Shown: positions 2,112 to 50,950 of the stretch, in pieces
Position numbering within the stretch: the first letter of the stretch is position 1
Layout: every line of letters starts with the position of its first letter
Virus record (IMG/VR): IMGVR_UViG_3300028654_000001
Coordinates: 62,001-126,000 of that record
Reading direction: 5' to 3' (one strand)
DNA length: 64,000 bases
Notes under the pieces: generated by a model
What the model saw: only the letters and a program-made list of their open reading frames with translations
What the model was told of the DNA's origin: nothing
The model's database searches: none
Translations under genes and position numbers: made by a program

Positions 2112-2318
2112 CTAGGGTTGATCTTTGAGGAGTCTCTCAAACCGAGTTGAGTACACGACCCTGAGGTATCGCTGACAGTTAAGTACAGTGTCGATTAGAT
2201 TAGCTTCCTCAAGATCTTTGTGCCCACAGATCCCATTCCACCTGGAACTAAGCTCCCGACTCGGTATCTTCTCTCGAGATATAAAGTACTGGCACGAAAG
2301 GCAAATGAGCTCAGCCAT
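2112..2318 (-). CDS. Small Cys-rich protein with C-terminal TRFERLL tag
   Basis: CLSC...C...C, ends YSTRFERLLKDQP. Confidence 0.75.
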   Translation of the reverse strand: MAELICLSCQYFISREKIPSRELSSRWNGICGHKDLEEANLIDTVLNCQRYLRVVYSTRFERLLKDQP

Positions 2319-2565
2319 TGTCCTTCAAGATCCTCTCAAATCGAGTGGGCCTCCCCGTCCAGCACGGAAGGTGCCGAGCATTACCTTCCGGATCATCCCA
2401 GATGTTGAAGTTGTCCTCGCAGTAACCATTGGCTGCCTGGAAGTCAGTTGGGAAGTGCACACACTCCTTGCACGGGGGACTCACCACTGAGGAGTGGTTC
2501 CCTCGTATGTGCGAAGGCAAGAGCTTGTCATGCGACATCAGGTAAGCGCTTCTAGATTGCTCCAA
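2311..2565 (-). CDS. Small Cys-rich protein with PTRFERIL tag (start may be downstream)
   Basis: CKEC...C...C, ends GRPTRFERILKDNG. Confidence 0.7.
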   Translation of the reverse strand: MEQSRSAYLMSHDKLLPSHIRGNHSSVVSPPCKECVHFPTDFQAANGYCEDNFNIWDDPEGNARHLPCWTGRPTRFERILKDNG

Positions 2566-2770
2566 CGATCCCCCTCAAGATCCGCTCAAACCTAGTAGGT
2601 GGGCTGTAGCGTGGGCACGTCGTCTTATGGGTGACATACTTATGATTACCATCCTCCTGTCGACAGTCTCCAAGCTGATCTCCTCTATCAGGGCGTAGGA
2701 ACAGCAAGTTTCTATGGGTGAACTTGGTGCACCCATTACAAAGACTAGGTTCGTTCGGGTCTTCATCCAT
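2552..2770 (-). CDS. Small Cys-rich protein with PTRFERIL tag
   Basis: CNGC...C...C, ends SPPTRFERILRGIVGAI; start taken at MDEDP. Confidence 0.75.
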   Translation of the reverse strand: MDEDPNEPSLCNGCTKFTHRNLLFLRPDRGDQLGDCRQEDGNHKYVTHKTTCPRYSPPTRFERILRGIVGAI

Positions 2771-2954
2771 CTTGAAGGATCCTTTCAAACCGAGTAGGCC
2801 TATACAGTGGGAGGTGTCTCTTGCATTCTGTTAGGAAGTCACCCTTGTAAGTCTGATCACTGAACCTAGCACCACAGGGAAAATGCCCATCTGGAACCTT
2901 CTTGGTTAGATAAGTACAATCGGAACAGGGGTTGCGATCTCGATTCGGAGGCAT
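2763..2954 (-). CDS. Small Cys-rich protein with PTRFERIL tag
   Basis: In-frame ATG at 2954 (MPPNRDRNPCSDC), ends YRPTRFERILQDG. Confidence 0.7.
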   Translation of the reverse strand: MPPNRDRNPCSDCTYLTKKVPDGHFPCGARFSDQTYKGDFLTECKRHLPLYRPTRFERILQDG

Positions 2955-2973
2955 CTTTCTCTGGCGTGGGAAC

Positions 2974-3231
2974 TCACGCATCTGCTGGCCGGATGTCCCC
3001 GGTGATAACGAGGTCAACTTCGAAGCCCTCGAACTCAGTCGGTATCTTGGGGCTCCTTGGCTTGTGGTGGAGCAGGATGTGAATGGTTGGGTGGGTCCGA
3101 GCCCCGTTGACCCCAACCCCCACGCCCGTTAGAGCGAAGCCTTGATCCTTGAGCTTCTGATGCAGCTTCTTACCCGCTCTCTTGCAATCAAGGAAAGCTG
3201 GGGAGTCCTCGGTAAGTATTGGCTTAGTCAT
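2974..3231 (-). CDS. Hypothetical protein
   Basis: 85-aa ORF; GGTATA motif 12 nt upstream of the ATG. Confidence 0.6.
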   Translation of the reverse strand: MTKPILTEDSPAFLDCKRAGKKLHQKLKDQGFALTGVGVGVNGARTHPTIHILLHHKPRSPKIPTEFEGFEVDLVITGDIRPADA

Positions 3232-3273
3232 CTAGGCGCACTATATACCACAGATGGTGTATACTTGGGAAGT

Positions 3274-3633: not shown

Positions 3634-3685
3634 TAAGCTTCAAGATGTCCCGCGGAGGTTGCCGAGTATCTGGCGTCTTAGAAAC

Positions 3686-4666: not shown

Positions 4667-4734
4667 GGCATTACCCCTTATTGAAGACTACGGATTTACT
4701 AGCTGAATTCTATTGAGTCCCTTGAATCCAGGAG

Positions 4735-11806: not shown

Positions 11807-12007
11807 CTAATCCTCCTTCGATAGGATCCTCTCGAATCGAGTCGGCCTCTCAAAAAAGTGCTCTGAGCACCCATCCATCTCGTGTAACTTCCAGCAAGTC
11901 TCATTGACCTGAGACAATGCCGTTCGCTTGCCATCCAACACAGGAATGAAAACCGACTCCCGAGTCCTGTACCGGTAGCAGTTGGAACAGGAACGAGATT
12001 CAGTCAC
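11807..12007 (-). CDS. Small Cys-rich protein with PTRFERIL tag
   Basis: CSNC...C...C, ends ERPTRFERILSKED. Confidence 0.75.
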   Translation of the reverse strand: MTESRSCSNCYRYRTRESVFIPVLDGKRTALSQVNETCWKLHEMDGCSEHFFERPTRFERILSKED

Positions 12008-15012: not shown

Positions 15013-15822
15013 ATGTCACCGAGTACGCTACCTTGCCCTCCACTCGAATCGTCTACTCAATCAAGTCCTTCATGGCCTATAGGGTTACACCAGGAGTATT
15101 CCTCCTCTCCCAGTGGCCGTAGTAGCCACCCAGTGGCCAACTTCTCCAAACCCGCCAGCCTCCGCTCCCAAGGCTTCAGCCTAAGACAAGTCTCAAAACT
15201 CACCAGCCTCCACCGGGAAACTCAACTTCCCCACGCCCGTCATAAAGGAAACTCCGGCAAAGCCGGACGGCTTTGCCTCAGACCCAAAGCCAAAATCCAA
15301 GAACTCTTCCAAGATAACTTACCACTCGTCACCTTCGAAGCCGCCAGAGCCCTCAAAAAAGTTCACCACGTCTATGACCTCAAAACCCTCATCCACTTTG
15401 GGTCAATCGGCCTCTGGGACGCCTGCAGGCGCTTCACCGGCGATGAACCCTCATTTCAATCCTATGCCCGTGTCCGCGTCCGGGGGCAAATCTGGGACGA
15501 GATCCGAACCGAATCTCATATCCCCCGCCGAATGATCCGGCCAGATAAAAAACCAACCTTCAACAACATCGACTCCGTTGTCCTCGAATCCCACAACCCA
15601 ACCCCAGAACACCTCCTCCATCTCAAAAACATCCTCCTACAAGTAGACTCTATCCCCTTCACCGACCGAGAACGCCAAGTCATTGACGCCCTCGCCTCCG
15701 GTCAATCACTAGGTGACCTCGCCCTCGCTTGGGGTACCTCCCAACCCTTCGTCAGCCAAATCAAAACTAGAGCCCTCCTCAAGATTGCTGACCTCGCCCA
15801 CAAGGCTGACCTGGATCCATAA
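15013..15822 (+). CDS. RNA polymerase sigma factor, FliA/WhiG-like region 2 plus region 4; start uncertain
   Basis: LIHFGSIGLWDACRRF...FQSYARVRVRGQIWDEIR (region 2); TDRERQVI...SLGDLALAWGTSQPFVSQIKTRALLKI (region 4 HTH). Confidence 0.85.
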   Translation: MSPSTLPCPPLESSTQSSPSWPIGLHQEYSSSPSGRSSHPVANFSKPASLRSQGFSLRQVSKLTSLHRETQLPHARHKGNSGKAGRLCLRPKAKIQELFQDNLPLVTFEAARALKKVHHVYDLKTLIHFGSIGLWDACRRFTGDEPSFQSYARVRVRGQIWDEIRTESHIPRRMIRPDKKPTFNNIDSVVLESHNPTPEHLLHLKNILLQVDSIPFTDRERQVIDALASGQSLGDLALAWGTSQPFVSQIKTRALLKIADLAHKADLDP

Positions 15823-15830: not shown

Positions 15831-16043
15831 TCAATCCTCTTCCTGGAGAATTCTCTCGAATCGCGTCGGGTATAGAGGCCTTGGATAGGGCAGGTATCTT
15901 AAACAACTCCTGATCTCTACGAACTCTAGGGGGCTGATTCTTTCCTCGCACCTTCGTTGCTTGAACTGACGCCCGTTGCCGGTGTCGACTAGCTCAAGCA
16001 CCCAGTGCTGGCAGTTGTCACAAGGGCAGGGAGGGTTTGGCAT
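15831..16043 (-). CDS. Small Cys-rich protein with PTRFERIL tag
   Basis: In-frame ATG 16043 (MPNPPCPCDNC), ends LYPTRFERILQEED. Confidence 0.75.
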   Translation of the reverse strand: MPNPPCPCDNCQHWVLELVDTGNGRQFKQRRCEERISPLEFVEIRSCLRYLPYPRPLYPTRFERILQEED

Positions 16044-16221
16044 CCTCATCCTCTTGAGGGAGTGGCTCTTGCCGGGGACCTCCGACGACTTGTTTAAACT
16101 CGAGAATGTAGGGACACTCTCGTATGATGAGAGTGTCAGTCCTCGGAGGAACAAGTCCCAAACTGCAAAGCTCTTCCTTCCACCGTTGACATCGATTACA
16201 AGGTCTCGGATCCTTTGGCAT
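16018..16221 (-). CDS. Small Cys-rich protein (same type, no tag)
   Basis: MPKDPRPCNRC...C...C; CTCTATGGTAG upstream, as at 20869. Confidence 0.65.
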   Translation of the reverse strand: MPKDPRPCNRCQRWKEELCSLGLVPPRTDTLIIRECPYILEFKQVVGGPRQEPLPQEDEDAKPSLPL

Positions 16222-16230
16222 CTGAGAAGG

Positions 16231-16262
16231 CTACCATAGAGAGCAGTTTCGGTGTAATGTCC
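16231..16262. promoter_or_regulatory. Conserved divergent-promoter cassette (second copy at 20876-20907)
   Basis: ctaccatagag-N9-ggtgta-n-tgtcc in both places. Confidence 0.6.
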
Positions 16263-16346
16263 TTTCATGTTGTGGACAATTATTGTATACGCCTTCGGTT
16301 GTTTAACTGGCTGGTATGTTCGTAAGATCTTGGAATAAGTGGCCTA

Positions 16347-20494: not shown

Positions 20495-20698
20495 ATGGAA
20501 CACGTTCGATTCAGCCAAGACCAGAAACGAATCATCGTCCTGAATAACCAATATGCTCAGTGCGGGATCAACTACGACAAGGACACTCGGCGCATCGTAG
20601 AGCAAGACATACACACGAGGCCTACCCTCAAGGCCATCCCCATTGAGTACGAAGAGTACCGCCTGCAGACGGTCTCTCTAGGACCCCTCTTCACGTAG
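20495..20698 (+). CDS. Hypothetical protein, paralog of 24876..25067
   Basis: YAQCGINYDKDTRR vs YAQFGVSCDKATRR. Confidence 0.7.
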   Translation: MEHVRFSQDQKRIIVLNNQYAQCGINYDKDTRRIVEQDIHTRPTLKAIPIEYEEYRLQTVSLGPLFT

Positions 20699-20869
20699 GA
20701 TACGTTCGAACCGTGTGGGGTACAGCCGCAGAAGTGGCAGTTGTACAGGACACACATCAGTACCTAGGAGACAGGGAGGAGTAACTCCCTTTGAGCACTC
20801 CCAGTACCTCCGTACCATCAACGAGTGCTGACAGTCATCACAGGGGTAGGGCTGGTCAGGCATCGCCAA
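20678..20869 (-). CDS. Small Cys-rich protein with PTRFERIL tag
   Basis: PCDDC...C...C, ends LYPTRFERILREEGS. Confidence 0.75.
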   Translation of the reverse strand: MAMPDQPYPCDDCQHSLMVRRYWECSKGVTPPCLLGTDVCPVQLPLLRLYPTRFERILREEGS

Positions 20870-29759: not shown

Positions 29760-30233
29760 TTAGACATCAGAATCAAGGATCCTTTCAAATCGAGTCGGCC
29801 TCTCTATAGGCTCCTCAGCACCCCGAACCAGGTGAGCATGTTTCAGGTCCATGACCGGCTGTGCTAATGTAGTGTGATCATCACACAGAAATGGGCCCCC
29901 TTGAGGATTCCATTTGAGGATTCTAAGTTCCCCATTGATGTAAGGTGTCAGCTCTGAACCTTCTTGAACCATCCTATCGAAGTGCCTTCTGAACGCTCGA
30001 GAGAGCTCCTCAGCAGTGAACACTTCGGGGGCGGCCATCACGAGCCGAAACAACCCGATCCCAACCCTCCAGAAGGTCTGTCCCTTCTCAGGAACATGCA
30101 TCCTCGTAGCTATCTTTGCACATACATGACAGCGAGGTGCAAAGTGCCTCAAGAAATTGTTCAGATCTTCAGACATCAGGCCCAAGAATCCTTTCAAATC
30201 GAGTCGGCCTCTCCACTGGAGGCCCCTCCTCAA
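29760..30233 (-). CDS. Zn-binding protein with PTRFERIL tag
   Basis: PRCHVCAKIATR...LCDDH; ends ERPTRFERILDSDV. Confidence 0.75.
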   Translation of the reverse strand: MRRGLQWRGRLDLKGFLGLMSEDLNNFLRHFAPRCHVCAKIATRMHVPEKGQTFWRVGIGLFRLVMAAPEVFTAEELSRAFRRHFDRMVQEGSELTPYINGELRILKWNPQGGPFLCDDHTTLAQPVMDLKHAHLVRGAEEPIERPTRFERILDSDV

Positions 30234-30588
30234 CTCGAACCAAGTTGGCTATGGGAAGGTCTTGATACCCCACACTGGCAGGACTCTGATGCTTGTCACA
30301 ATAGTACCAACCTCTAATCCTGGGCCAGTCCAATGGGTAAACTTCAACGTCGGCACTACCACTTCGAACCAAGTCATTCTCGATCAAGGTTCTCAACCAT
30401 GTGCGCCCTAGGTCACCTGCAACCTCAATCGAGGTACTCTGAAACAGAAAACAGAAGTCCTCACACCTTGCTTCAAATAAAGTATGGAACCATGTGGAGA
30501 CTGTGATTCGAGTAGCAAGCTCTCCACAGAAACAACACCGGGGCCCAAACTTACTCAGAAGGTCGACAACATCAGACATGGCTCTCAA
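30169..30588 (-). CDS. Zn-binding protein with PTRFERIL tag, tandem paralog of 29760
   Basis: PRCCFCGELATR...YCDKH; ends ERPTRFERILGPDV. Confidence 0.75.
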   Translation of the reverse strand: MRAMSDVVDLLSKFGPRCCFCGELATRITVSTWFHTLFEARCEDFCFLFQSTSIEVAGDLGRTWLRTLIENDLVRSGSADVEVYPLDWPRIRGWYYCDKHQSPASVGYQDLPIANLVRVEEGPPVERPTRFERILGPDV

Positions 30589-31470: not shown

Positions 31471-31683
31471 TCACTCGTTCTGGAGGATGCGTTGGAACCT
31501 GGTCAGGGGTTGATTCGATTCCAGATGGGGGCAAGGGTCGTAGTTGATGTTACGGCTGTTGGTGAGGCGGAGGAGGCCTTGGAGACCTACCCAGACGCGT
31601 TCACCCTTATCGCAGAGGGTGATGTTCTGGTCTTGGAGGGTGGGTTTGTTGTTCCAGTGGCACTTGTCACATTCGGTGGGCAT
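31471..31683 (-). CDS. Small Cys-rich protein with TRFQRIL tag
   Basis: MPTECDKC...CDKGER; paralogous to the N-terminus of 42372..42836. Confidence 0.75.
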   Translation of the reverse strand: MPTECDKCHWNNKPTLQDQNITLCDKGERVWVGLQGLLRLTNSRNINYDPCPHLESNQPLTRFQRILQNE

Positions 31684-31702: not shown

Positions 31703-31804
31703 TCAGATGACTGGGTCCCGTTCGAATCTTGATGGGCGGTCTTGGTCTATCTCTTCCTCTAGGGGGAGTTGGTCAGGCACTGAGACAGTGTGGGGTAGGT
31801 TCAC
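31703..31804 (-). CDS. 33-aa peptide ending DRPSRFERDPVI (not in ORF track)
   Basis: Manual translation from GTG 31804; carries the RFERxxVI tag. Confidence 0.5.
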   Translation of the reverse strand: MNLPHTVSVPDQLPLEEEIDQDRPSRFERDPVI

Positions 31805-32415: not shown

Positions 32416-32451
32416 GTTTCAATGAACGGGAAGATCCTATGCGCTTCCCAG
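32416..32451 (-). CRISPR. Solitary CRISPR repeat (type D), copy 1
   Basis: CTGGGAAGCGCATAGGATCTTCCCGTTCATTGAAAC: hairpin plus the array 3' end. Confidence 0.85.
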
Positions 32452-34143: not shown

Positions 34144-34223
34144 AGGCTGATTCCGAGTTCCTGATGTAAGCGGACTAGGCACTTCATGATTTTCATGCCA
34201 ATTGGACAGCGAGGGCAGGGCCT

Positions 34224-34259
34224 GTTTCAATGAACGGGAAGGTCCTATGCGCTTCCCAG
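34224..34259 (-). CRISPR. Solitary CRISPR repeat (type D), copy 2
   Basis: 35/36 identical to 32416-32451. Confidence 0.85.
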
Positions 34260-34501
34260 TAATTTATCAATACTGGATAGACACTTATGAGTCAATGAGG
34301 TTATTCTCGGTGTACTTGCTTAGGTGTCCTACCGATATGCCAAGTCCTACATGGTTTTCATCAATGCTCTTCGTGAATGTTTGGGTTTAGGGCCAATTCC
34401 AGGTACAAAGGTTGAGGTAGAGGATCTCGAGTGGGACGCTTGGCCAGGGGGTGTTTGAGTGATTTTGGTGAGAACCCAAAAGATGGTATGTATCATTAGG
34501 C

Positions 34502-39153: not shown

Positions 39154-39936
39154 TCAATCCTTGTCTTCTTCGAACAGGTGTTCAAATCTTGTGGGTCTTG
39201 GGCCATCGTACGGTTCGACTTCTTTTTGGAGTTCGCGAGCGGTGGCTTGGTTTCGTTCTGGGGTGGGCTCTCCGGTGTCTTCGTCGGTAGCTTCATAGTT
39301 GGGGGACATAAAGCTATAGAGTTCGATGAGGTTCTCTCTGAGGGCCATCAGAGGGATGCTGAAGCGTTCACCCTCAGGGTAGCATTGGATGAGGTTTTCG
39401 ATTAATCTGGCTTGTCTTCTGGCATTTAGTAACGAGTCCTGGTTGACTATCAATCGTCGAATCTGTTGGGTTGTGGGTTCTACATACGATTGAGCTATTC
39501 GCAGTCGGCCCTCTGGTGTTAGTGCTGAGTGATTGACGAGATCCAAGACTGAGGGGATGGGCTCAGAGACTTGACTACTGAGGAACCAATCGAGGAACTT
39601 CTTCGAGGGTGACGGGTAATGCTCTTTGATGTACCTGATAGCTCCTCTGAAGTCGTGGCTCCCGGGGACGCTGAACTCATCGCAGAGGAGGTTCAAGAGC
39701 TCGTGATAGGTCGGCAGGGGCGGTTCCTGACCTGGTTCCGGTCTTGGGCTGGAGACGATATCGATGTCGATGGGCATGGGTAAATCCCTAAGTCGATTCC
39801 GTTTGAGCTCCTTCTGAAGGCCATCAATCCGGATGTTAGTTTGAATCCATCCAATCATGAAGAACACCGCGAGAACCAAGCGGTATTCCGTAACCAAGTT
39901 AGCGAGCTCTTTAGCGAGGGCTATCATATCAGTCAT
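39154..39936 (-). CDS. Four-member paralog family protein with N-terminal TM segment and PTRFEH tag
   Basis: KKFLDWF...TPEGRLRIA...PEGERFS; ends GPRPTRFEHLFEEDKD. Confidence 0.75.
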   Translation of the reverse strand: MTDMIALAKELANLVTEYRLVLAVFFMIGWIQTNIRIDGLQKELKRNRLRDLPMPIDIDIVSSPRPEPGQEPPLPTYHELLNLLCDEFSVPGSHDFRGAIRYIKEHYPSPSKKFLDWFLSSQVSEPIPSVLDLVNHSALTPEGRLRIAQSYVEPTTQQIRRLIVNQDSLLNARRQARLIENLIQCYPEGERFSIPLMALRENLIELYSFMSPNYEATDEDTGEPTPERNQATARELQKEVEPYDGPRPTRFEHLFEEDKD

Positions 39937-40440
39937 TCAATCCTCGTCGAGGATCCTTTCAAACCTAGTTTTTACCAATGGTTCTGGTAACCTACCCCTG
40001 AACTTACGGACTAAGGGTGCAACCTCGAGGTCTTGATATCTCCAATTGGGGTCTCCGCAGTAGTCACAATAGCAGGGCAGTGGGTCTTTCCAACTACTAT
40101 AGGGCTCTTTACGACTCTCAATCAAGGACTCAGTCAAGTCTCTGACTCCGGCGATAGCCTCCAGGTTGATTTCTTGAATCAGGTTGGTGAGCTCCTCTGA
40201 CTGGGATAGCTCAGCTAGCCACTCTCTACACTTATCTTGGATTTCATGTCGGACTGTTCGAGTTGAAGCTCCATCTTCCCCTACCACGCACTCTGTTTCT
40301 AGAGAGCCGAATCGGAGGGTTGTTGTCTTGTAGCCCTCTTGAGGTCGGATTTTTCTCCTGGTGGCCAAGCTGTAACACGCGACACATCTCTGGCCGTACT
40401 TTAGAAGCAACCTGATTGTAGCTCCAGAGGGCATAGTCAA
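39937..40440 (-). CDS. Zn-binding protein with TRFERIL tag (29760/30169 family)
   Basis: QRCVACYSLATR...YCDYC...YQDL; ends KTRFERILDED. Confidence 0.75.
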   Translation of the reverse strand: MTMPSGATIRLLLKYGQRCVACYSLATRRKIRPQEGYKTTTLRFGSLETECVVGEDGASTRTVRHEIQDKCREWLAELSQSEELTNLIQEINLEAIAGVRDLTESLIESRKEPYSSWKDPLPCYCDYCGDPNWRYQDLEVAPLVRKFRGRLPEPLVKTRFERILDED

Positions 40441-40808
40441 TCCTCGTTGAGAATCCTCTCAAACCTGGTGGGGTAGGGGCCGGTATAGACTCCAACTTCT
40501 TCAGGCTTGCTGCAGATCCTACAGAGGGTTTCTCGAAGGGCCGTGACAGGTTCACTGAAGCGTTCTTTTTCTGGAAAGCAGCTGATGAGGGTTTCGATGC
40601 TGAAGATGATCTGTCTGATCCCATCCAAACCTTGAGGCACATCGAGTTTAGTCTGTACCCTATTCAAGTAGGACTTGGCGATAGCGTCTCGTCCAGTTCT
40701 TGTACTCGCGTGGTACCCAAGCATGGGGTTGGTGAAGCCCTCTGGGCACTTGACTAAGTATTGGCCATTGAACCACTCTAGGAACTTCTTGGCGTGTTTT
40801 GATGGCAT
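40437..40808 (-). CDS. Four-member paralog family protein with PTRFERIL tag
   Basis: KKFLEWF...TGRDAIA...PEKERFS; ends GPYPTRFERILNED. Confidence 0.75.
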   Translation of the reverse strand: MPSKHAKKFLEWFNGQYLVKCPEGFTNPMLGYHASTRTGRDAIAKSYLNRVQTKLDVPQGLDGIRQIIFSIETLISCFPEKERFSEPVTALRETLCRICSKPEEVGVYTGPYPTRFERILNED

Positions 40809-41715: not shown

Positions 41716-42099
41716 TTAGCCATCGGTGAGAATCCTCTCGAATCGAGTTGGTCGCGGCCCATAATAAGGGGAGGCTCTATTATACTTGGAAACTAAGTCA
41801 CAGAAAGCACTTCGTAGAGCCGTAGTAGTGTCAGTAAACCTCTCATCTTTAGGGAGTAAAGACATGAAGTCCTCACAATTATGGATAAGCCACCTAGTAT
41901 CTTCCATCTTTGATTGAATGAGTTCAACACTCCTACTCCCTACTGTACTTACTGAAGCGCAGAGGGACTTCGTTAGCTGGTCCCTACCGGCTTGAGTAGA
42001 GACTAGACCATTGATGTATTCAACTACAGACAGATCGTCACCTCTATCAAAGTAAGTTCTAAACCACTCAATGTAGTCTTCTGGGGTTACCTTTTTCAC
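41716..42099 (-). CDS. Four-member paralog family protein with PTRFERIL tag
   Basis: YIEWF...TQAGRDQL...PKDERFT; ends GPRPTRFERILTDG. Confidence 0.75.
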   Translation of the reverse strand: MKKVTPEDYIEWFRTYFDRGDDLSVVEYINGLVSTQAGRDQLTKSLCASVSTVGSRSVELIQSKMEDTRWLIHNCEDFMSLLPKDERFTDTTTALRSAFCDLVSKYNRASPYYGPRPTRFERILTDG

Positions 42100-42371: not shown

Positions 42372-42836
42372 TTACTCGTCCTCTCGAGTGATGCGTTCGA
42401 ACCGAGTTGGGGCTTGAGTTTCTTCGATCTCAGGGGGTGGGTTCATGAAGAGCCTTCGGACTTGCTCGATGATGCTCTTGTCGAACCAACAAAGGTTCTT
42501 GGAGGTCATTGTTGAGCTGATCCAACCCATGTAGTGATGATTTTCGAAGTGCTCCCCGTAGTCGAGGAAGAGGTCAACAGTGTCACTACCGGTGTTCCAT
42601 ACGATCCTGAACCTGGAGGTGATGTCGATGTTCAACCTCACCTTCATGGTCTTTTGATCTGGTTCTAGGCGGTGGGGGCATGGATCAGTAGTGGCATCGT
42701 CCTTGATGCGGTCGATACGTAGGAGGCCTTCATGGGCTGACATCCAAATGCGTTCACCCTTATCACAGGTTGCTTGACCGCACTCCGGGATAGCTCTCCC
42801 GGTGTTCCACTGACACTTGTCGCATTCGGAGGGCAT
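42372..42836 (-). CDS. Cys-rich N-domain protein with PTRFERI tag
   Basis: MPSECDKC...; ends APTRFERITREDE. Confidence 0.75.
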   Translation of the reverse strand: MPSECDKCQWNTGRAIPECGQATCDKGERIWMSAHEGLLRIDRIKDDATTDPCPHRLEPDQKTMKVRLNIDITSRFRIVWNTGSDTVDLFLDYGEHFENHHYMGWISSTMTSKNLCWFDKSIIEQVRRLFMNPPPEIEETQAPTRFERITREDE

Positions 42837-43896: not shown

Positions 43897-44421
43897 ATTC
43901 GTGGTTGATTCTCACTCAGTAGTGAAGATGAAGGCCTTCCACTCGTGGCTTATACCATCTGGTAGAGTGTCGCCTTCAAGAGCCTCCCCGAGAGTCCCGT
44001 CCTCGGTGAAGAGCAATCGGGCTATAGCCGTGAGCTGAATCTCACAAAGGGCGTCTGGGCACTCCAATGGGTATCCAATGAGGACTACTCGTTCACCATT
44101 GTCCTGAGTACCAAAGGCTCGGAAGTTGAACACACAGGTACTTGATGGATTATCAAGCTCAAATACAACCGTGGCGGTCTTGGGTGTCGGGAACGTTATG
44201 CTTTGGATCATCCGTGGGTAACCTTTCTCATGGGTAAGCTGAGAGAATTGGCTTGGAGTACCGCTTGAACAATCTCGATAGGGGCGACTCCAGTGGATAG
44301 GTAGAGAGTCCCCTCACGGATAGCTACAATACAGTCATACTCAAATGTAAAGATGAAAGCTGAGTAGAAGCCGCGGTAGTAACTCCACTCCCAACCCTCG
44401 AGCAATGGTGGTAGACCTGGG

Positions 44422-44742
44422 TTATTCCTCGCGTGTGACCCTCTCAAACCTCGTGAGGACGGGGACTTCTTCTGTATCGTTGATAACTTCACGAGCTTCG
44501 TTGATGAGGACTTGATGGAGGCTGCACCTTCTCGGTTCTGGCAAACCTTCAAGGTTCCGGATCCCGACGTAGCTTTCCGCTTGTGAGGTGCGGTCACTGA
44601 CCCAACCGAGGTTAATCCTTTGCTCGAAGTTCGGGCCGAACTCGATGACGAGGCTCGCAACTGCCCAGGAGCCTTCTTCTTGATTGATGATGATCCTGGC
44701 ATTGGTTTGGATGACCTTGGTCTTGGGTTCATGCTTGGGCAC
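44422..44742 (-). CDS. Protein with TRFERV tag
   Basis: Ends VLTRFERVTREE. Confidence 0.7.
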   Translation of the reverse strand: MPKHEPKTKVIQTNARIIINQEEGSWAVASLVIEFGPNFEQRINLGWVSDRTSQAESYVGIRNLEGLPEPRRCSLHQVLINEAREVINDTEEVPVLTRFERVTREE

Positions 44743-45401: not shown

Positions 45402-45788
45402 ATGGCTTTAGAAGCTGGACGATCCTTCGGGACGGTTGGTCGGCACGTTCATATCACTGATAGTTCTACTGGGATGTCCTATGCTGTTTACCTGGAAGTG
45501 GCAGAAGGGAATAGGTTGTCGTTTGTGGAACGGTTTCTCGGCTGGGTAAAGCCATTAGACGGCACTCAAAACTGTCCGTGGTATTGGACTGGGGCGTTGA
45601 AGTGGAATCGATTCAACCCGGAAGAAGTCCGGACCCTCGATCTTATAGAACCTGGGTCTGTTGGAGTCGACTTCTGGAATAAGCTGGCTCTTGACCTGGT
45701 GGACACGTATCTTACGGTAATGTCTGATCCGGAGTCCGAGTACCGAGGGCCTAGACCGAATCGATTCGAACGCGAGGAAGTGATCTGA
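45402..45788 (+). CDS. Protein with RFEREEVI tag
   Basis: Ends YRGPRPNRFEREEVI; GGTGTA 11 nt upstream. Confidence 0.75.
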   Translation: MALEAGRSFGTVGRHVHITDSSTGMSYAVYLEVAEGNRLSFVERFLGWVKPLDGTQNCPWYWTGALKWNRFNPEEVRTLDLIEPGSVGVDFWNKLALDLVDTYLTVMSDPESEYRGPRPNRFEREEVI

Positions 45789-46072
45789 TGTTGAAGTTCA
45801 TAATTGGCTCGTTCTTCTGTGTTGAGTACCGAGACCTTGAGCAGTTCATTCTCGAGGAGACTGGGCATGAGTACGAGATCATCCCCAATGAAGAGTTCAG
45901 GAACGACTCGGTTCATAGATATCGAGTCCATGCTGACCTCAAGACCCATTACTGGGAAGAGTTCAAAACCACAGGAGAGCAGAAGCCATTCAACCTAGAT
46001 GAGATCCTGCTCGGCCTCTGTGCTGATGGTAAGATCTCTGCAGGAAACTACCTCATCTGTGTTAGCTGGTGA
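45788..46072 (+). CDS. Phage hypothetical protein
   Basis: Ends GKISAGNYLICVSW. Confidence 0.7.
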   Translation: MLKFIIGSFFCVEYRDLEQFILEETGHEYEIIPNEEFRNDSVHRYRVHADLKTHYWEEFKTTGEQKPFNLDEILLGLCADGKISAGNYLICVSW

Positions 46073-46076
46073 GTCA

Positions 46077-46574
46077 ATGGAGAGTGCACCCAGACCTATC
46101 ACGTGGTGGAGGCTTGGGCCTCAAGACTTACCGATCTTCAACAAGCGACAAATGATGACGGTAACTATCCTAAGGGAGGGTGGAGAGGGTACTGTGGACG
46201 TATATCACCCCCGTCGAATTCTACTTCCCTTGGTTGACATCCTTTTTCCACCCTATGACTTCCTTCTCGAGAGGATGACAGAGTTAGTTCCTCACGACAC
46301 TACTGCCTGGAGAGAAGGGGGGTTAACTCCCCTGGCGATCCAAGGGAAGCTCTACGGTGTCCTACGACCGCACGCGACGGGTGAGTCCTACGGGATCTGT
46401 TTCTCCCCTGAGGATCTGACACCAGGTTTCCAAGATGAATTCCGGAACCCTGGACACATCTACGAGATGCCTCCCCCTGAGTGCCATCGGTATGGACTTC
46501 CTCTATGGGTGGATCCAGGCTCTCTCTACAACGGACCACGGCCAACAAGGTTCGAGCGCGAACCGGTGATCTAA
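46077..46574 (+). CDS. PRPITWW-family protein with RFEREPVI tag
   Basis: ATG 46077 (MESAPRPITWW); paralog of 46598. Confidence 0.75.
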   Translation: MESAPRPITWWRLGPQDLPIFNKRQMMTVTILREGGEGTVDVYHPRRILLPLVDILFPPYDFLLERMTELVPHDTTAWREGGLTPLAIQGKLYGVLRPHATGESYGICFSPEDLTPGFQDEFRNPGHIYEMPPPECHRYGLPLWVDPGSLYNGPRPTRFEREPVI

Positions 46575-46597: not shown

Positions 46598-47134
46598 GTG
46601 ATTCCTCCACGACCAATCACCTGGTGGGGCCTCGGCATGGGGTGCCTACCCGTACTCAATAAACCTGCAAGGACTCCATCCTTTATCATTGATGAGAATG
46701 CGGACACCATTTTTATGGTGTCCATCCCCAATCTTATCCAAGTACCAATCTTCGAGCTTCATTGTGGAGAGGAGGGCACTTCCATCGAAGAACAGATTCA
46801 GGAGCTCCTAGGAGTCTTGCTGGACGCTGCCAAGTTCGAGACTTGTACGAATGATACCGAACCAGGGGGAGCCTTCTACGGGCTCCTGAGAGCCAACTAC
46901 AGAATGCAGAATAGGGATGGTTGGATGTGGACCGTCGAATTGGGCCTGGCCTTCTCAGAGGAAGTCCTGACCCCTCACTTCGATGACCTTATGGCTTCTG
47001 GGGCCGTATTCTCGAGCCATGAGCTGAAACCTGATGAATGCCAAAGGATTGGGCTTCCAACTCTCTTGGAAGTGTCAGCATCTGAACCTGAGCTATACCG
47101 TCCGACTAGATTCGAGCGCGAAGACGTGATATGA
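46598..47134 (+). CDS. PRPITWW-family protein with RFEREDVI tag
   Basis: Shared YG.LR, FS.E.LTP.F, P.EC.R.GLP. Confidence 0.75.
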   Translation: MIPPRPITWWGLGMGCLPVLNKPARTPSFIIDENADTIFMVSIPNLIQVPIFELHCGEEGTSIEEQIQELLGVLLDAAKFETCTNDTEPGGAFYGLLRANYRMQNRDGWMWTVELGLAFSEEVLTPHFDDLMASGAVFSSHELKPDECQRIGLPTLLEVSASEPELYRPTRFEREDVI

Positions 47135-47143: not shown

Positions 47144-47506
47144 ATGCTCGAGGTACTTGTTCAGGTCAGTGAAACTATAGATACTTACATAGTAGATGTA
47201 ATAGATGTGAGGGGGTCTACCCCAGACGATGAGCCTAATAACAATTATAACTCTGAGTTGAGAGTTGAATTGAACGAGATTATCGACGATGAGATTAGTA
47301 ACGTGGTCTCTTCTAGGGTAAGTAAGCTGGTCTCCCACTTGACTGAGAAGTATTTCATGTACTCGTGGAGGGTCATTGTGCTTAATGACGGTATCGAGGT
47401 CAATCGAATTGAGTGCAAAGTAGTAGGAGAGTCGAGCCAATCTGTCCAGGAAGAGCCAGCCCCTATTGAGCGGAGGTCTCGATTTGACCGGGATGACGTG
47501 ATTTAA
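47144..47506 (+). CDS. Protein with RFDRDDVI tag
   Basis: Ends ERRSRFDRDDVI. Confidence 0.7.
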   Translation: MLEVLVQVSETIDTYIVDVIDVRGSTPDDEPNNNYNSELRVELNEIIDDEISNVVSSRVSKLVSHLTEKYFMYSWRVIVLNDGIEVNRIECKVVGESSQSVQEEPAPIERRSRFDRDDVI

Positions 47507-47998: not shown

Positions 47999-48004
47999 GA
48001 CTTA

Positions 48005-48688
48005 TCAGATCTTCTTCTCAAGTTCCTCAATGCGCTCATGAGTCTTTTGGATCGTATCCGGGCTCATATAGTCCAAGTTGATCTTGAGCTGAGTCCTCAA
48101 GCTTTCTAACTCGAGTCGGGCTTGGTACTTCTTCTCAGCAGCTCCACTACGGGGCTTGATGAGGTATTGGACTACGCCCCCTAATCTCCGCTTCCCCACG
48201 ATGGTCCCTGATGGAACATCAGTACCAATCGGAGTTGTCCTGAGTACAAAGGTGGCACCAGCATCATTGTCCCAACCCCGCCCCTCAATTCGAGCACCCT
48301 CTTCTTCGATATGACACCCAGGCTTCCAAGGCTTGGAGGACTCTTCCTTGGGGATCCGTTCTGGCTTCTTCGGTCTCCCATTCTTGTCAAGGTAAGTGAC
48401 CTCAACCGTTGAGTCCAAGTACCGTTGCCTCACTCGTCTCTCTAAATCACGCTTGTAGTTATCTTCCCACTCTTGGAACAATCGAGTGAGATTAACCCTA
48501 TCCTTCTGAGGTCCGAGAGCTACTGATATAAACCGAGTGAGACTTGCGGGGGGTCCTTGATAAATAGGACCATTGGAGTCATAATCACAGTCTCGAAGTG
48601 CGTCGATGAAGATGGGCCAATACTCCCCTTGGGAAGGCATGTGCTCGGCTCGCTCCACCAACTCCTTAATGATCGGATCGTTGTTCAT
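48005..48688 (-). CDS. Hypothetical protein
   Basis: 227-aa ORF. Confidence 0.7.
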   Translation of the reverse strand: MNNDPIIKELVERAEHMPSQGEYWPIFIDALRDCDYDSNGPIYQGPPASLTRFISVALGPQKDRVNLTRLFQEWEDNYKRDLERRVRQRYLDSTVEVTYLDKNGRPKKPERIPKEESSKPWKPGCHIEEEGARIEGRGWDNDAGATFVLRTTPIGTDVPSGTIVGKRRLGGVVQYLIKPRSGAAEKKYQARLELESLRTQLKINLDYMSPDTIQKTHERIEELEKKI

Positions 48689-49829
48689 ACTCTTTACCCC
48701 AGCATAAGAGGATTGTGACTACTCATCAAACTTCAGCTTGAGGACCCGCTCTCGTTGGGCGGTCTGCTCCTCTTCGGTGATGTACCGGCGCCCGTGTTCA
48801 TCCTGTCGAGGGCACACGAGCCGTCCATGTTCGATCGTGGGCCCCGGGAGCTGACCCCGGTCAATCATGTCTTGGAGAGCTCTCTCGTCTTTTGGGGACA
48901 GCTTCGGGTCGACCATACCCGGTCACTACACCGATTTACGTGGAAGCTAAGGGGACCCGTCGACGAGGAGGAACGGTAACGGCTGTCTTATCGATATAGA
49001 CCATGGCGTCATTTTGGTCGACCCCAATGAGGTACTTCCATTTAGGGAAGTCCTTGATGAGTTTGATAGCCATATCAACTGAGTAAATCTTAGCCTGCTC
49101 ACGAGGCCCCCAGTACCAATGAATGCCCTCATTGCAGAGGTACACTCCAGTGACGGTTCGGTGCATAATGAAGATGCTCATGACTTCTCCTCTGTGTGCT
49201 TGAGTTTGTAACTATCGGTCCAAGCTAATGATACCCTTTCCGGCACTACGTCACCGTCAACCACGACCGGAACAAGGGTCGTACCATTTGCTTCCAATGT
49301 CTTCTCAGCGGCTGCCACTTGCTCCTCAGTAAGACTTATCTTCTGAGAAAAGTTCTCACTAGGCACCCCACATGGATCAAAGCCGTAGATCACCTGTACA
49401 CCAATGTCACGGTCTCGTAGACTACACATTGGTGATCGAAGGTAACTCTCACCAACCAAAAGAACTGCAGGTTCAGGGTTTGGTTGCTTTGCCATTACTT
49501 TTGGATCCCCCGGCTGTACTTTTCAAGTGCATCAAAGATACTGAATCCGACCAATATGTTGCCACCCCCATCAACCATAATGACCGACTTCTTTGTGTCA
49601 GGAATGGGCTCCTCTTCCGAGGAAAGAGCGGTCACGAGACAGTACTCACTGCACTCGTCTTTGGTCCACTCCCCTAGTCGAGCGTTGTAGGTGTCCAAGA
49701 AGACCTTCTCACTCTGCACTGGGAGCATATCTGATCTCCATCCACCTTCTTGGCGATTCATCATCCAGAGCATCCCGAGGCTGTCTCGTCGAAGTACACA
49801 GTCACCTAGTAGGTTTCGCTTTGCCATGA

Positions 49830-50207
49830 TCACACCCGCCTCCAGCCATTGGCCCGCCAACCATCTTTGATTTTTTGCCACTCACCGTAGGTGGTTCGGA
49901 TCAATTTATCAGCGAGTACAAGAGTGATCTTCCCATCGTTATCGAAGTACACTGTACGAGTTTCAGCACCCTTCTGAAAGGTCTGAGACAACGTCAGCGA
50001 GTAGTGGACCCAACCTACATCCCGAATGAAGTCCCAACGGTCCAACCACTCACGAGTAGGAATGCTGAAGATCTCACCCTTGCTGTTCGACATGCGAACA
50101 TTCTGGCCGTCAAGATAACTTACGATCAGGGTGTTCTGATTAAGCTTCCACACACCAAAGGTTTGTTCAGCCGCTTTGATCTCGTCAATGGTTGCGTTAG
50201 TTGCCAT
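49830..50207 (-). CDS. Hypothetical protein
   Basis: Class-1 promoter 50213-50241, ATG 5 nt later. Confidence 0.7.
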   Translation of the reverse strand: MATNATIDEIKAAEQTFGVWKLNQNTLIVSYLDGQNVRMSNSKGEIFSIPTREWLDRWDFIRDVGWVHYSLTLSQTFQKGAETRTVYFDNDGKITLVLADKLIRTTYGEWQKIKDGWRANGWRRV

Positions 50208-50473
50208 GCCCTATATTACGCACAACCAGGGCGGCTCTCACTGACTTTTCATAATTAGTCTAGAAGGCCGAATCAAATCCTCGACTGGAACCTTAGTATT
50301 CGGATCAACTTCAATGCAGCTATAACTATCCCTGAGGATGATTGCGTGAGGCTTCGTGGTCAAACCCTGAGCAATTACGCGCCCATTGACCAAGGACAGA
50401 GCCTCATAAACCCCTGACTTTGGCCATAGGATCAACCCATTGCGGGCGGCGATGGTTACAAGATCTGAGCTAG

Positions 50474-50950
50474 TCATTGCACTATAGATTGAACTAAGGG
50501 CTCGTCAGTTTCAGTTTCGTTCGAGGGTTCCTCATCTATCTCTAGGAGCCGTTCGAACCTAGTGGGGCGAGGACCGTCATACTCTTCTGAGCTGGCCTCA
50601 ACTCCATGGCGGCTGTTGAGGAAGTCACAGAGCTCGAACAGCTGCTTTCGCATAGCCATGATGACTGGACTGAAGCGTTCCTCATCTGGGAGGAGGTTGA
50701 TGAAGTTCTCGAGCTCGATGACGAATCTTCGGATATCTCTTGAGGAAGACCAGAACCTCTTGATTTTCTCAAGCTTATTCTGTGATGCCTGCACCATAGC
50801 AAGAGCTATCTTGATCCTACCCTCCTTGGAGATGATCAACTGCTCTAGTGAGGTGAGGAGCTTTCGAGTACTCTCTGGAGGGCCGCTAGACTTATCCTTG
50901 ATGTCTCTGGTGGCGTACCATTCAAGGTATCTTTGAAAGTGAGGTTCCAC
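50474..50950 (-). CDS. Four-member paralog family protein with PTRFERLL tag
   Basis: RYLEWY...KEGRIKIA...PDEERFS; GPRPTRFERLL; AGGAG RBS. Confidence 0.75.
   Translation of the reverse strand: MEPHFQRYLEWYATRDIKDKSSGPPESTRKLLTSLEQLIISKEGRIKIALAMVQASQNKLEKIKRFWSSSRDIRRFVIELENFINLLPDEERFSPVIMAMRKQLFELCDFLNSRHGVEASSEEYDGPRPTRFERLLEIDEEPSNETETDEPLVQSIVQ

Follow-up and report, generated by a model that had tools for sequence, protein, structure and literature searches.

About one in five proteins of a 512-kb uncultured bacteriophage, from dozens of unrelated families, ends in the same 8-10 residue peptide (P-T-R-F-E-R plus one of two endings), which behaves like a protein address or docking label of a kind not described for phages. 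We analyzed a window of 64,000 nucleotides, corresponding to positions 62,001-126,000 of a 512,571-bp huge-phage contig (IMG/VR record IMGVR_UViG_3300028654_000001), and then followed the tag across the clade of this phage and into more distant huge phages.

A shared C-terminal peptide on 22 ORFs

An initial annotation, made from the sequence alone, had listed 22 ORFs of unrelated families that carry the motif at or near the C-terminus, in two variants. This observation was confirmed, as all 22 ORFs carry the motif. In variant 1, RFERIL is followed by an acidic tail, and in variant 2 the protein terminates in RFER-[ED]-x-V-I-COOH. The tagged ORFs are as follows, with the score against a profile HMM of the tag in parentheses.

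2112..2318 (-), 68-aa Cys-rich ORF ending ...YSTRFERLLKDQP, variant 1 (16.3 bits)
2311..2565 (-), 84-aa Cys-rich ORF ending ...RPTRFERILKDNG, variant 1 (23.6 bits)
2552..2788 (-), 78-aa Cys-rich ORF ending ...PPTRFERILRGIVGAI, variant 1 (22.9 bits)
2763..3116 (-), 117-aa ORF ending ...RPTRFERILQDG, variant 1 (23.4 bits)
11807..12007 (-), 66-aa Cys-rich ORF ending ...RPTRFERILSKED, variant 1 (23.5 bits)
15831..16268 (-), 145-aa ORF ending ...YPTRFERILQEED, variant 1 (21.8 bits)
20678..20869 (-), 63-aa Cys-rich ORF ending ...YPTRFERILREEGS, variant 1 (21.5 bits)
29760..30233 (-), 157-aa ORF (CxxC...LATR family) ending ...RPTRFERILDSDV, variant 1 (22.3 bits)
30169..30588 (-), 139-aa paralogue ending ...RPTRFERILGPDV, variant 1 (21.9 bits)
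31471..31683 (-), 70-aa Cys-rich ORF ending ...PLTRFQRILQNE, variant 1 with Gln for Glu (TRFQRIL; 11.0 bits)
31703..31804 (-), 33-aa ORF ending ...RPSRFERDPVI, variant 2, possibly a remnant (too short for the HMM scan)
39154..39936 (-), 260-aa ORF ending ...RPTRFEHLFEEDKD, variant 1 (16.1 bits)
39937..40440 (-), 167-aa ORF ending ...VKTRFERILDED, variant 1 (17.6 bits)
40437..40808 (-), 123-aa ORF (EWF...ERFS family) ending ...YPTRFERILNED, variant 1 (24.8 bits)
41716..42099 (-), 127-aa paralogue ending ...RPTRFERILTDG, variant 1 (24.7 bits)
42372..42836 (-), 154-aa ORF ending ...APTRFERITREDE, variant 1 (17.1 bits)
44422..44742 (-), 106-aa ORF ending ...VLTRFERVTREE, variant 1 (13.8 bits)
45402..45788 (+), 128-aa ORF ending ...RPNRFEREEVI, variant 2 (14.0 bits)
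45999..46574 (+), 191-aa ORF (182 aa in the public call) ending ...RPTRFEREPVI, variant 2 (22.9 bits)
46598..47134 (+), 178-aa paralogue ending ...RPTRFEREDVI, variant 2 (25.2 bits)
47144..47506 (+), 120-aa ORF ending ...RRSRFDRDDVI, variant 2 (16.2 bits)
50474..50950 (-), 158-aa ORF (EWF...ERFS family) with ...RPTRFERLLEIDEE... 24 residues before the end, variant 1 with a long tail (20.3 bits)

To test whether the motif could arise by chance, a condition that had been set beforehand, we compared its frequency with shuffled controls. The regular expression RF[ED][RH] occurs 22 times in the six frames of the window, and every occurrence lies 1-24 codons before a stop, whereas dinucleotide-type shuffles gave a mean of 2.6 and a maximum of 6. 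Residue-shuffled proteomes gave 0.6 occurrences against 17 observed in a crude gene set. The profile HMM split the ORFs of the window cleanly, with 21 ORFs scoring 11.0-25.2 bits and the next best scoring 5.9 bits; the 33-aa ORF 31703-31804 makes 22. A 23rd regex hit (22089-22232, ...SRRFERP) scored 4.3 bits and looks like chance.

Two entries required comment. The start given as 46077 in the initial annotation is an internal start of ORF 45999-46574. ORF 44422-44742 lies inside a 174-aa ORF in another frame that the public gene caller preferred, but the tagged frame is supported by homology to 42372-42836.

The claim that the carriers are unrelated also held, as BLAST of the protein bodies gave about 6 families in the window and 88 families among 144 tagged proteins of the clade. 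So did the claim that selection acts on the peptide and not on a DNA repeat. Over 82 distinct instances, codon positions 1 and 2 of T-R-F-E-R carry 1.0-2.0 bits and position 3 carries 0.2-0.5 bits (1.0 for the two-codon Phe). Arg uses both CGN and AGR codons, all three stop codons follow the tag, and nothing is conserved beyond it.

We also considered that the motif has no shared function and is a relic of common ancestry of fast-evolving paralogues, or a by-product of a DNA-level element such as a recombination joint, a translational-coupling signal or a mobile cassette end. Many tagged genes are indeed small ORFans in tandem arrays, acidic-tail codons (GAG GA.) sometimes coincide with a Shine-Dalgarno-like sequence for the next gene, and the variants segregate by gene block. 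However, third codon positions are nearly free, and carriers include HU, RecA-like, kinase, Zn-ribbon/DUF3268 and HK97-capsid sequences of independent origin, some with untagged homologues elsewhere. The tag is also far better conserved than the bodies and is kept on orthologues at 36-51% identity. This reading is largely refuted by the codon pattern, and we consider it very unlikely.

Distribution, composition and age of the tag

Across the clade we found 215 distinct tagged ORFs, of which 96% have the tag within 20 residues of the end and none exceeds 386 aa (median 106 aa). About 21% of genes are tagged (22 of 105 called genes). The tag sits on a Pro-rich linker, and its core stays 87-95% identical while protein bodies fall below 30-60% identity. 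By residue, position 0 is T in 186 tags and S in 15 and never D, followed by R in 208 of 208, then F in 202 and L in 6, E in 185 and D in 14, and R in 204 and H in 4, with Pro at position -1 in 150 of 208. The two endings are equally common (100 versus 101 tags) and segregate by gene block, with 58 of 72 adjacent non-paralogous pairs sharing a variant (p = 1.6e-7).

The tag is not strictly C-terminal, which was not apparent to the initial annotation. It is internal in an atypical protein kinase of the phage (L211:1517-2560 and L008:1931-2908; L numbers denote sampled sequences or lineages, followed by positions) and in a Cys-rich protein (L008:8138-8602), and it is doubled at the N-terminus of another protein (L013:5234-5773).

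In untagged relatives, we detected 0 tags in 700 kb, comprising 150 kb of LR745208 and 550 kb around 80 intact-capsid-gene loci. In 596 Gb of GTDB genomes, real tags occur only on four phage-like contigs. No paper in the library searched contains the motif. The motif is nevertheless older than the clade, because orthologues in 54-63% GC huge phages keep it, at about 6% of genes; in 59% and 54% GC huge phages the orthologues carry the motif at the same place.

A link between the tag and an atypical kinase family

A subfamily of the kinase carries [TS]-x-[FWY]-[DE]-x-[LI]-[LM] plus an acidic run at the same position. Other family members have an HPD J-domain instead, and the two were never found together (J-domain only, 30; element only, 7; neither, 22; both, 0). 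All four lineages sampled that have the element-bearing form (the phage studied here, L269, L270 and L272) also have tagged clients, and the oldest clients lie within about 10 kb of the kinase. In L272 the kinase has RSRYERIM and one client has RTRYERVM, where our clade has F and L in both. We note that this co-occurrence and co-variation rest on four related lineages and one client pair, and that the kinase may be just one more client that carries the tag internally. The kinase family lacks the HRD aspartate (HGAxLPxH), so its catalytic activity is uncertain.

One possibility is a phospho-switch, in which the near-invariant Thr would be phosphorylated by the phage kinase and the phosphorylated tag would be read by a pThr-binding module or change the behavior of the client; the kinase's own copy would then be an autophosphorylation or pseudo-substrate loop. 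Position 0 is Thr in 89% and Ser in 7% of tags and never Asp, although Asp is a good helix cap, and the oldest clients are syntenic with the kinase, which itself carries the motif. On the other hand, rare tags have Asn, Gln, Pro, Val or Ile at this position, the HRD Asp is missing, no FHA-type reader appeared in about 125 kb with Pfam records, and the pattern T-x-x-E is equally well explained as a helix capping box. We regard this possibility as quite unlikely.

Capsid loading and degradation as possible alternative functions

The initial annotation had proposed a phage-wide addressing code, acting as a capsid cargo-loading or injection signal, a docking motif for one hub, or a degron. This interpretation was partly supported: the tag behaves as a peptide-level, genome-wide address or docking code shared by unrelated proteins, but the evidence does not settle which of the three readings applies.

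In the capsid reading, the tag would bind the assembling procapsid (shell, scaffold or portal), so that tagged proteins are packaged and delivered, and perhaps ejected, with the DNA, and variants 1 and 2 could mark two virion locations. The support is only indirect. Two tagged protein families are rearranged fragments of a phage-G-type HK97-fold major capsid protein, and one tagged 351-aa protein (L028:3834-4886) has a domain shared with virion structural, decoration and fibre PHROGs. The size ceiling of 386 aa, the share of about 20% of genes, which is similar to the virion share of jumbo phages, and the flexible linker, which mirrors encapsulin cargo peptides, would also fit. Tagged proteins such as the HU-like, RecA/Sak4-like and Tad2-like proteins and the kinase would make sense as early-acting cargo. 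However, the capsid-protein fragments lie among nucleotide-metabolism genes and not in a head module, and no portal, protease or scaffold was seen near tagged clusters. A shell protein carrying its own cargo tag is not how encapsulins work, the motif is unlike known cargo peptides, and this reading leaves the kinase and J-domain connection unexplained. Capsid loading is the main rival to our preferred explanation, although we consider it unlikely.

In the degron reading, the tag would be recognized by one of the phage's classical AAA ATPases, or by a host AAA+ protease, for timed removal or remodelling of a whole class of phage proteins. Exposed C-terminal tails are the usual handles of AAA+ machines, two PF00004 AAA ATPases flank the conserved tag-dense cluster, and variant 2 has a fixed hydrophobic carboxy-terminus. 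Genes directly behind the putative leaderless promoter are never tagged (0 of 14), which hints that the tag tracks an expression class. Against this, one of the ATPases (AAA-2) has full-length homologues in untagged phages such as Mx1 and XacN1 and is thus not clade-specific, the extreme C-terminus of variant 1 is variable, internal and N-terminal copies exist, and no protease or tmRNA was found in the sampled regions. Capsid-derived, HU-like and kinase proteins, and other probably stable proteins, would be odd degradation targets. This reading appears doubtful.

Comparison with known systems

Encapsulin cargo-loading peptides are likewise short conserved C-terminal peptides on flexible linkers of otherwise unrelated proteins, which dock cargo inside an HK97-fold shell, and HK97-fold sequences are present in this genome. 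The motif, however, is unrelated, hundreds of carriers are spread over the genome rather than one or a few cargo genes next to the shell gene, the HK97-type fragments are themselves tagged, the tag can be internal or N-terminal, and shell binding is conjectural. The capsid targeting sequence of phage T4 internal proteins also sorts several unrelated proteins to one destination, but it is N-terminal, about 10 residues long and removed by the prohead protease, whereas the present tag is mostly C-terminal, comes in two variants, marks about 20% of genes and shows no evidence of cleavage.

Hydrophobic tail motifs that dock to a kinase N-lobe pocket (the AGC-kinase hydrophobic motif and PIF pocket), and kinase docking motifs generally, share an aromatic and hydrophobic motif in flexible client tails and a copy within the kinase itself. 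Here the motif and the kinase family, which lacks the HRD Asp, are different, any pocket is hypothetical, and the scale of more than 100 clients is unusual. Among Hsp70 recognition elements (J-domain co-chaperones, DnaK-binding peptides and the KFERQ-like pentapeptide read by Hsc70), K-F-E-R-Q resembles R-F-E-R in composition and order, basic residues flank hydrophobic ones, the kinase family carries either a J-domain or the tag-like element, and a phage J-domain protein that binds host DnaK is a known precedent (PMC3486835). KFERQ-type targeting is, however, a eukaryotic lysosomal pathway, and Gln is normally absent here. Hsp70 sites are usually degenerate, extended and poor in acidic residues, whereas this motif is sharply defined, probably helical and followed by acids.

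The C-terminal helices of ESCRT-III proteins (MIM), which bind the MIT domain of the AAA ATPase Vps4, and the C-terminal clamp-binding tails of T4 replication and late-transcription proteins also represent peptides shared by several different proteins that dock on one hub, and AAA ATPases are encoded beside a tag-dense cluster. Those hubs have a handful of clients, and the phage AAA ATPases are not specific to the tag-bearing clade. Finally, C-terminal secretion signals of type IV (Dot/Icm-type) and type I substrates and ssrA-type degrons mark many unrelated proteins near the C-terminus for one machine, but those signals are loose compositional biases or end in fixed terminal residues added by tmRNA. 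The present motif is a sharply conserved, encoded internal core with a variable or fixed ending, and no secretion system or tmRNA was seen.

A proposed docking or sorting peptide

Taken together, we favor, with moderate confidence, the explanation that the motif is a genetically encoded, portable short linear docking or sorting peptide read by one shared partner. From the residue pattern we infer a short N-capped amphipathic helix, with Thr/Ser as cap, Glu/Asp three residues later, and Phe plus Ile-Leu on one face, flanked by two invariant or nearly invariant Arg. Our analysis shows that the tag exists, is selected as a peptide, is portable and old, comes in two classes and is linked to the kinase family; its helical shape, the existence of a single receptor and the identity of that receptor are inferences from sequence, without direct evidence of binding to anything.

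Our leading but tentative candidate for the reader is the kinase/chaperone axis. Either the kinase-like protein itself may bind the tag in trans and its own copy in cis, or the partner may be Hsp70/DnaK, which the J-domain forms of the same kinase family recruit. The internal and N-terminal copies, the age of the tag and its place in a kinase family whose other members carry a J-domain instead point to hub docking, possibly through the kinase or Hsp70, at least as strongly as to capsid loading, although the tagged proteins that look virion-related fit the latter better. As only about 150 kb of the 512-kb genome was covered, a dedicated receptor such as a PDZ, TPR or FHA protein or a scaffold could lie in the remainder.

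In this view, the tag would label about a fifth of the phage's proteins, all small, soluble and mostly of unknown function, for recognition by one shared partner, and the two endings would define two co-transcribed client classes. The label would have begun on a few proteins, and inside an atypical kinase-like protein, of a wider group of huge phages, and would then have spread to more than 100 genes in this 49%-GC clade.

Genomic context of the tagged proteins

The 64-kb window has a GC content of 50% and belongs to a huge phage (positions 62,001-126,000 of the JGI/IMG-VR contig Ga0265322_10000002, IMGVR_UViG_3300028654_000001, 512,571 bp), of which an independent ENA assembly of 512,069 bp exists. 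The phage encodes a tail-fibre-like protein of 814 aa, sigma-factor-like genes, a ParB-like gene and a type I-C CRISPR-Cas effector module, while nearly all other genes are unannotated; none of about 45 called genes around 29-50 kb has a Pfam record. Its capsid-protein sequences relate it distantly to Bacillus phage G, Tunturiibacter phage Tunturi_5 and the uncultured 485-kb phage LR745208. The CRISPR-Cas module and its arrays occupy window positions 51694-54272, 54601-61905 and 62305-64000, with two inverted arrays of about 33 and at least 24 repeats flanking the cas genes. The three ORFs after cas3 have no Pfam hit, so that no Cas1, Cas2 or Cas4 was recognized. Two solitary CRISPR-repeat-like units lie far from the arrays, each just upstream of a minus-strand gene, and they could be Cas-processing or regulatory sites.

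Cas5: 61255-61905
Cas8c: 59597-61258
Cas7: 58562-59500
Cas3: 56102-58501
Solitary repeat-like unit: 32416-32458, just upstream of the minus-strand gene 31853-32422
Solitary repeat-like unit: 34224-34266, just upstream of the minus-strand gene 33346-34230

We also detected a conserved motif of about 40 nt, GGTGAGATC-N8-CTCA-N2-CGTA(A/G)TAC, with an ATG located 5-7 nt downstream. This is a likely phage-specific promoter that would give leaderless or near-leaderless mRNAs, possibly read by the phage sigma-like factors encoded at 15013-15822 and 20913-21689. The ORF directly behind this motif is never tagged (0 of 14). A search for sigma-70 promoters and terminators around tagged genes showed no excess over shuffled sequence.

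Motif occurrences, plus strand: 11410, 12985, 14657, 20461, 22272, 23747, 23981, 24842, 25586, 26764, 27694
Motif occurrences, minus strand: 5013, 5393, 38727

The tag is under selection as a peptide

The initial annotation had described a shared C-terminal peptide on 22 ORFs from unrelated families, and had named an abundance no greater than in shuffled proteomes as an outcome that would count against it. The pattern RF[ED][RH] occurs 22 times in the six frames of the window, always 1-24 codons before a stop, whereas shuffled DNA gives 2.6 occurrences on average and residue-shuffled proteins give 0.6. A profile HMM of the tag separates 21 ORFs (11.0-25.2 bits) from everything else (5.9 bits or less). 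With the 33-aa ORF 31703-31804, this reproduces the 22 ORFs, including 31471-31683, which carries TRFQRIL. BLAST of the proteins shows about six families that share only the last ten or so residues. We note that the tagged 106-aa ORF 44422-44742 (minus strand) lies entirely within a 174-aa ORF (44208-44732) in another frame of the same strand, which the public gene call chose instead; one of the two may be spurious, or there may be a frameshift.

To distinguish selection on the peptide from a DNA repeat or mobile element, we compared codon usage over 82 distinct instances. Codon positions 1 and 2 of T-R-F-E-R carry 1-2 bits and position 3 carries 0.2-0.5 bits, Arg uses both CGN and AGR, and no conservation extends into the flanks. 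This pattern rules out the repeat or mobile-element explanation, and a DNA-level or purely historical origin is very unlikely. Stop-codon recoding was likewise rejected, because TAA, TAG and TGA all follow tags. The observation therefore holds, as does the claim that selection acts on the peptide rather than on DNA. The tag also departs from ssrA-type C-terminal degrons, which are added by tmRNA and have fixed extreme C-terminal residues: it is encoded in each gene, no tmRNA or known RNA element was found in the window, and only one of its two forms has a fixed end.

Scale and anatomy of the tag

Degenerate DNA patterns for the two forms of the tag recovered the motif only in this contig and a small set of related contigs in IMG/VR, and in JGI metagenomes, where 41 of 55 loci were real and all were near 48-51% GC. 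In all clade sequence examined, we counted 215 distinct tagged ORFs. In 207 of these (96%) the tag ends within 20 residues of the C terminus, and none is longer than 386 aa. An earlier subset of 144 fell into 88 body families. In regions with public gene calls, 22 of 105 genes (21%) are tagged, and none of the 22 has a Pfam hit, against 13 of 83 untagged genes (P = 0.065). Tagged proteins of the window have no known domain in Pfam or PHROGs, and a large protein search seeded on the last 40 residues returned only the query itself. Tagged proteins are shorter than untagged ones (median, 106 versus 150 aa) but do not otherwise differ in pI, hydropathy, Cys content or TM segments, and few have TM-like segments.

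The residue counts at each position are Pro at -1 (150/208), Thr 186 and Ser 15 at 0, Arg 208/208, Phe 202 and Leu 6, Glu 185 and Asp 14, and Arg 204 and His 4, with Pro-rich positions from -1 to -6. The core is followed either by Ile-Leu and an acidic tail of 3-7 residues (variant 1, whose extreme C terminus is variable) or by [ED]-x-Val-Ile and the stop (variant 2). A frequent longer form is Y-x-G-P-R-P-T-R-F-E-R. The pattern S/T-x-x-E/D/Q after a Pro, with hydrophobic residues at +2, +5 and +6 (and at +8 and +9 in TRFDRINALL), is what an N-capped amphipathic helix would show, although this is inferred from the residue pattern and not from a computed structure. The core stays 87-95% identical between homologues whose bodies are under 30% to 60% identical. 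Variants 1 and 2 are equally frequent (100 versus 101) and segregate by gene block, with 58 of 72 adjacent same-strand, nonparalogous pairs sharing the variant (P = 1.6e-7). In the window, variant 2 marks the plus-strand block at 45.4-47.5 kb and variant 1 marks the minus-strand genes.

Proteins that carry the tag

Most carriers are ORFans. The recognizable ones are listed below, where L followed by a number designates a sequence locus examined and the coordinates are those within it. Others are Cys-rich Zn-ribbon-type proteins (DUF3268/Zn_ribbon_Top1 in relatives), two capsid-protein fragments and a protein kinase, the last two of which are treated in later sections. Enzymes with Pfam hits (thymidine kinase, adenylosuccinate synthase, NADAR, phosphatase, nucleotidyltransferases, AAA ATPases and Cas proteins) are untagged.

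L032:10885-11271: HU-like protein (5.8e-10)
L040:3138-3794: RecA/Sak4-like ATPase
L028:3834-4886: 351-aa protein with a domain shared by virion structural, decoration and fibre PHROGs
One further carrier: a weak Tad2-like hit (0.0016)

The tag is not strictly C-terminal. It is internal in the kinase, internal between two Cys pairs in L008:8138-8602, and 65 residues from the end in L013:8626-9201. In L013:5234-5773 (minus strand), a 179-aa protein conserved in L009, two tag-like copies (MTRFDHDIEV and TSRFDRLDREVDL) are present at the N terminus and are followed by an internal duplication. This protein could be a regulator or a competitor for the tag reader.

Distribution and age of the tag

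We next asked whether the tag occurs outside this clade. No tags of 10 bits or more were found in 150 kb of LR745208 or in 550 kb around 80 loci with an intact phage-G-type capsid gene, against 7 in 21 kb of this phage. To test for mimicry of a host motif, we scanned one genome per species for 185,579 bacterial and archaeal species and obtained 66 hits, about the number expected by chance. Only four of these are real C-terminal tags, and the rest are internal matches in large conserved proteins; the tag is therefore not a general cellular motif. The four lie on short contigs of 48-50% GC (L068, L071, L104 and L120, JBAYMG01 contigs) binned into one MAG, Candidatus Omnitrophota SO_2016_LW1_34 (PVC group). 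These contigs are fragments of a relative of this phage and are at most a weak hint at the host, or a binning artifact.

A search with the kinase described below led to related huge-phage contigs of 458 kb (63% GC, L269), 206 kb (59% GC, L270) and 60 kb (54% GC, L272), all of which share the adenylosuccinate-synthase/kinase block. In L270, 2 of 35 genes end in ...SRFERIG... or ...NRFERIG..., and one of these is the orthologue (36% identity, in a syntenic block) of the tagged L211:10001-10495 of our clade, a family that keeps TRFDRINALL plus acids in all seven clade orthologues. In L272, two clients are orthologues of our tagged proteins, at 51% and 48% identity, and carry the motif at the same position. 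The Zn-ribbon/DUF3268 family has the tag in some lineages and not in others. Thus, a few carriers are ancient, and the 49%-GC clade expanded the tag from about 6% to about 21% of genes.

A tag-like element in the phage kinase

The eukaryotic-like kinase of the phage (L211:1517-2560), whose ePK-like fold was confirmed, contains ...GPRTRFDHILEDDDDD... at residues 45-60, before the conserved beta3 Lys, and its orthologue in another clade member has the same element. The family is large, with 1,795 relatives. It keeps the beta3 Lys and the DFG-position Asp but has HGAxLPxH in place of the HRD catalytic loop, so it may be an atypical kinase or a pseudokinase. The kinase is linked to an adenylosuccinate synthetase (PurA) gene at each of the huge-phage loci below and also in mycobacteriophage Dietrick (gp249 and gp252).

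L211:150-2560
L269:8704-12028
L270:8659-10987
L272:8679-10906
L274:19635-23351

A subfamily found on huge-phage contigs has, at the same place, an element [TS]-x-[FWY]-[DE]-x-[LI]-[LM] followed by an acidic run. All four lineages sampled with this form also have tagged clients. In L272 the kinase element is RSRYERIM and one client has RTRYERVM, where our clade has Phe and Leu in both; this covariation is suggestive, but it is a single case. The motif thus occurs both in client tails and in cis in the kinase, as in docking of the PIF-pocket type. Most other family members have an N-terminal J-domain with the HPD motif instead, as does Dietrick gp249 (with subthreshold Pfam DnaJ hits in the family), and LR745208 encodes a clear DnaJ-kinase fusion of a more canonical kinase type. 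In a rough pattern-based classification of 59 members, 30 have the J-domain only, 7 the element only, 22 neither and none both. J-domains recruit Hsp70, and a phage J-domain protein that binds host DnaK is documented (PMC3486835). The swap, which is only indirect evidence, suggests that the N-terminal module of the kinase, and by extension the tag, connects to the Hsp70 system or to the kinase itself. R-F-E-R resembles in composition the K-F-E-R-Q element read by Hsc70, a pentapeptide type with basic, acidic and bulky hydrophobic residues flanked by Gln, although Gln is absent here apart from rare TRFQRIL variants, and we regard the resemblance as a lead only.

Capsid-protein fragments in a tag-dense cluster flanked by AAA ATPases

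In a tag-dense cluster conserved in at least six related contigs (L013, L009, L033, L039, L041 and L045), two tagged ORFs (L013:2331-3080 and L013:4197-5237, contig positions about 220.8-223.8 kb) carry pieces of a phage-G-type HK97 major capsid protein. The solved reference is PDB 6WKK, and intact homologues are 87-94% identical across hundreds of contigs. The 249-aa protein holds capsid residues 3-67(86), and the 346-aa protein holds residues 209-291 followed directly by residues 87-143. The order is therefore permuted and the protein is split, and residues 144-208 were not found. A rearranged HK97 topology has a precedent in phage BPP-1 (PMC3863775). A monomer model of the permuted fragment reached a pLDDT of only 34 and was unusable. 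The cluster sits among nucleotide-metabolism genes and two AAA ATPases, not in a head module, and comparison with the head modules of phage G, Tunturi_5 and LR745208 showed no synteny beyond the capsid pieces. A search for an intact capsid gene in this genome with an MCP profile returned 80 loci, all close relatives of LR745208, and whether this phage has such a gene elsewhere could not be established.

These fragments raise the possibility that the tag directs proteins to the procapsid or virion. As in encapsulin cargo loading, a short conserved terminal peptide on a Pro-rich, presumably flexible linker is found on otherwise unrelated proteins. However, encapsulin cargo peptides are of a Gly/Ser/Leu-rich hydrophobic type, whereas the core here is P-T-R-F-E-R with its two Arg. 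Nor are the tagged genes adjacent to an intact HK97-fold shell gene in the roughly 150 kb of 512 kb seen; tags are spread over all sampled regions, and the only HK97-type sequences found are the two rearranged fragments, which are themselves tagged. The capsid targeting sequence of phage T4 is N-terminal and removed by the prohead protease, whereas 96% of the tags here are C-terminal and no protease was found in the sampled regions.

Two classical AAA (PF00004) ATPases (L057:91-1329 and L057:12941-14125, contig positions about 212.8-226.8 kb) flank the cluster, and we considered them as a hub of the MIM-MIT type that would co-occur with its clients. The second ends in a poly-Asp/Glu tail of about 25 residues and has full-length homologues in untagged phages, one of them in Myxococcus phage Mx1, and the first matches only generic FtsH-type modules. 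A role for either as a clade-specific receptor is therefore not supported.

Discussion

Taken together, these data fit a portable docking peptide that is read by a shared partner and defines two client classes. We are confident in this general statement and moderately so in the model in its full form. The existence of the tag, selection on it as a peptide, its occurrence at different positions in unrelated proteins, its two classes and its age rest directly on the sequence comparisons, as does the presence of a similar element in the kinase family. The helical shape, the existence and identity of a single reader, and any binding to the kinase, Hsp70 or a capsid shell are inferred, and catalysis by the kinase-like protein is uncertain. 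The initial proposal of a phage-wide addressing code is thus only partly supported, in that the data favor docking or sorting without singling out a destination. Our tentative first candidate for the reader is the kinase/Hsp70 axis. A procapsid or virion reader is less likely, an AAA+ or degron system is improbable, and a phospho-switch, which overlaps the first candidate, is more improbable still; an as yet unseen dedicated receptor accounts for the remainder.

A bolder possibility, which we consider doubtful, is that a bacteriophage runs its own proteome-wide protein-sorting code. In this view, two flavors of one peptide label would direct about 100 or more small phage proteins to one or two destinations or handlers, and the label would be read by a phage kinase-like hub or by hijacked Hsp70, in a lineage that has also split and permuted its HK97 capsid protein. 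This would be an organelle-style addressing system that evolved inside a virus of bacteria. Targeting and docking peptides as such are familiar. What appears to be new is this motif, its two-class form, its coverage of about a fifth of a phage proteome, and its embedding in a kinase family in place of a J-domain; in the literature searched, no paper contains the motif or describes a proteome-wide terminal sorting or docking signal in huge or jumbo phages.

Huge phages encode hundreds of proteins of unknown function. A label shared by a fifth of them groups this dark matter into classes at once and gives a simple experimental handle, since a 10-residue peptide can be used for pulldowns and fusions, and it could also become a portable tag for engineering. 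The link to a kinase family that otherwise carries a J-domain suggests a concrete, testable partner. If one receptor reads the tag, this would be the first phage-encoded sorting or docking code acting on the scale of a proteome, and it would bear on how huge phages organize infection, whether through cargo delivery, compartments, chaperone capture or kinase signaling.
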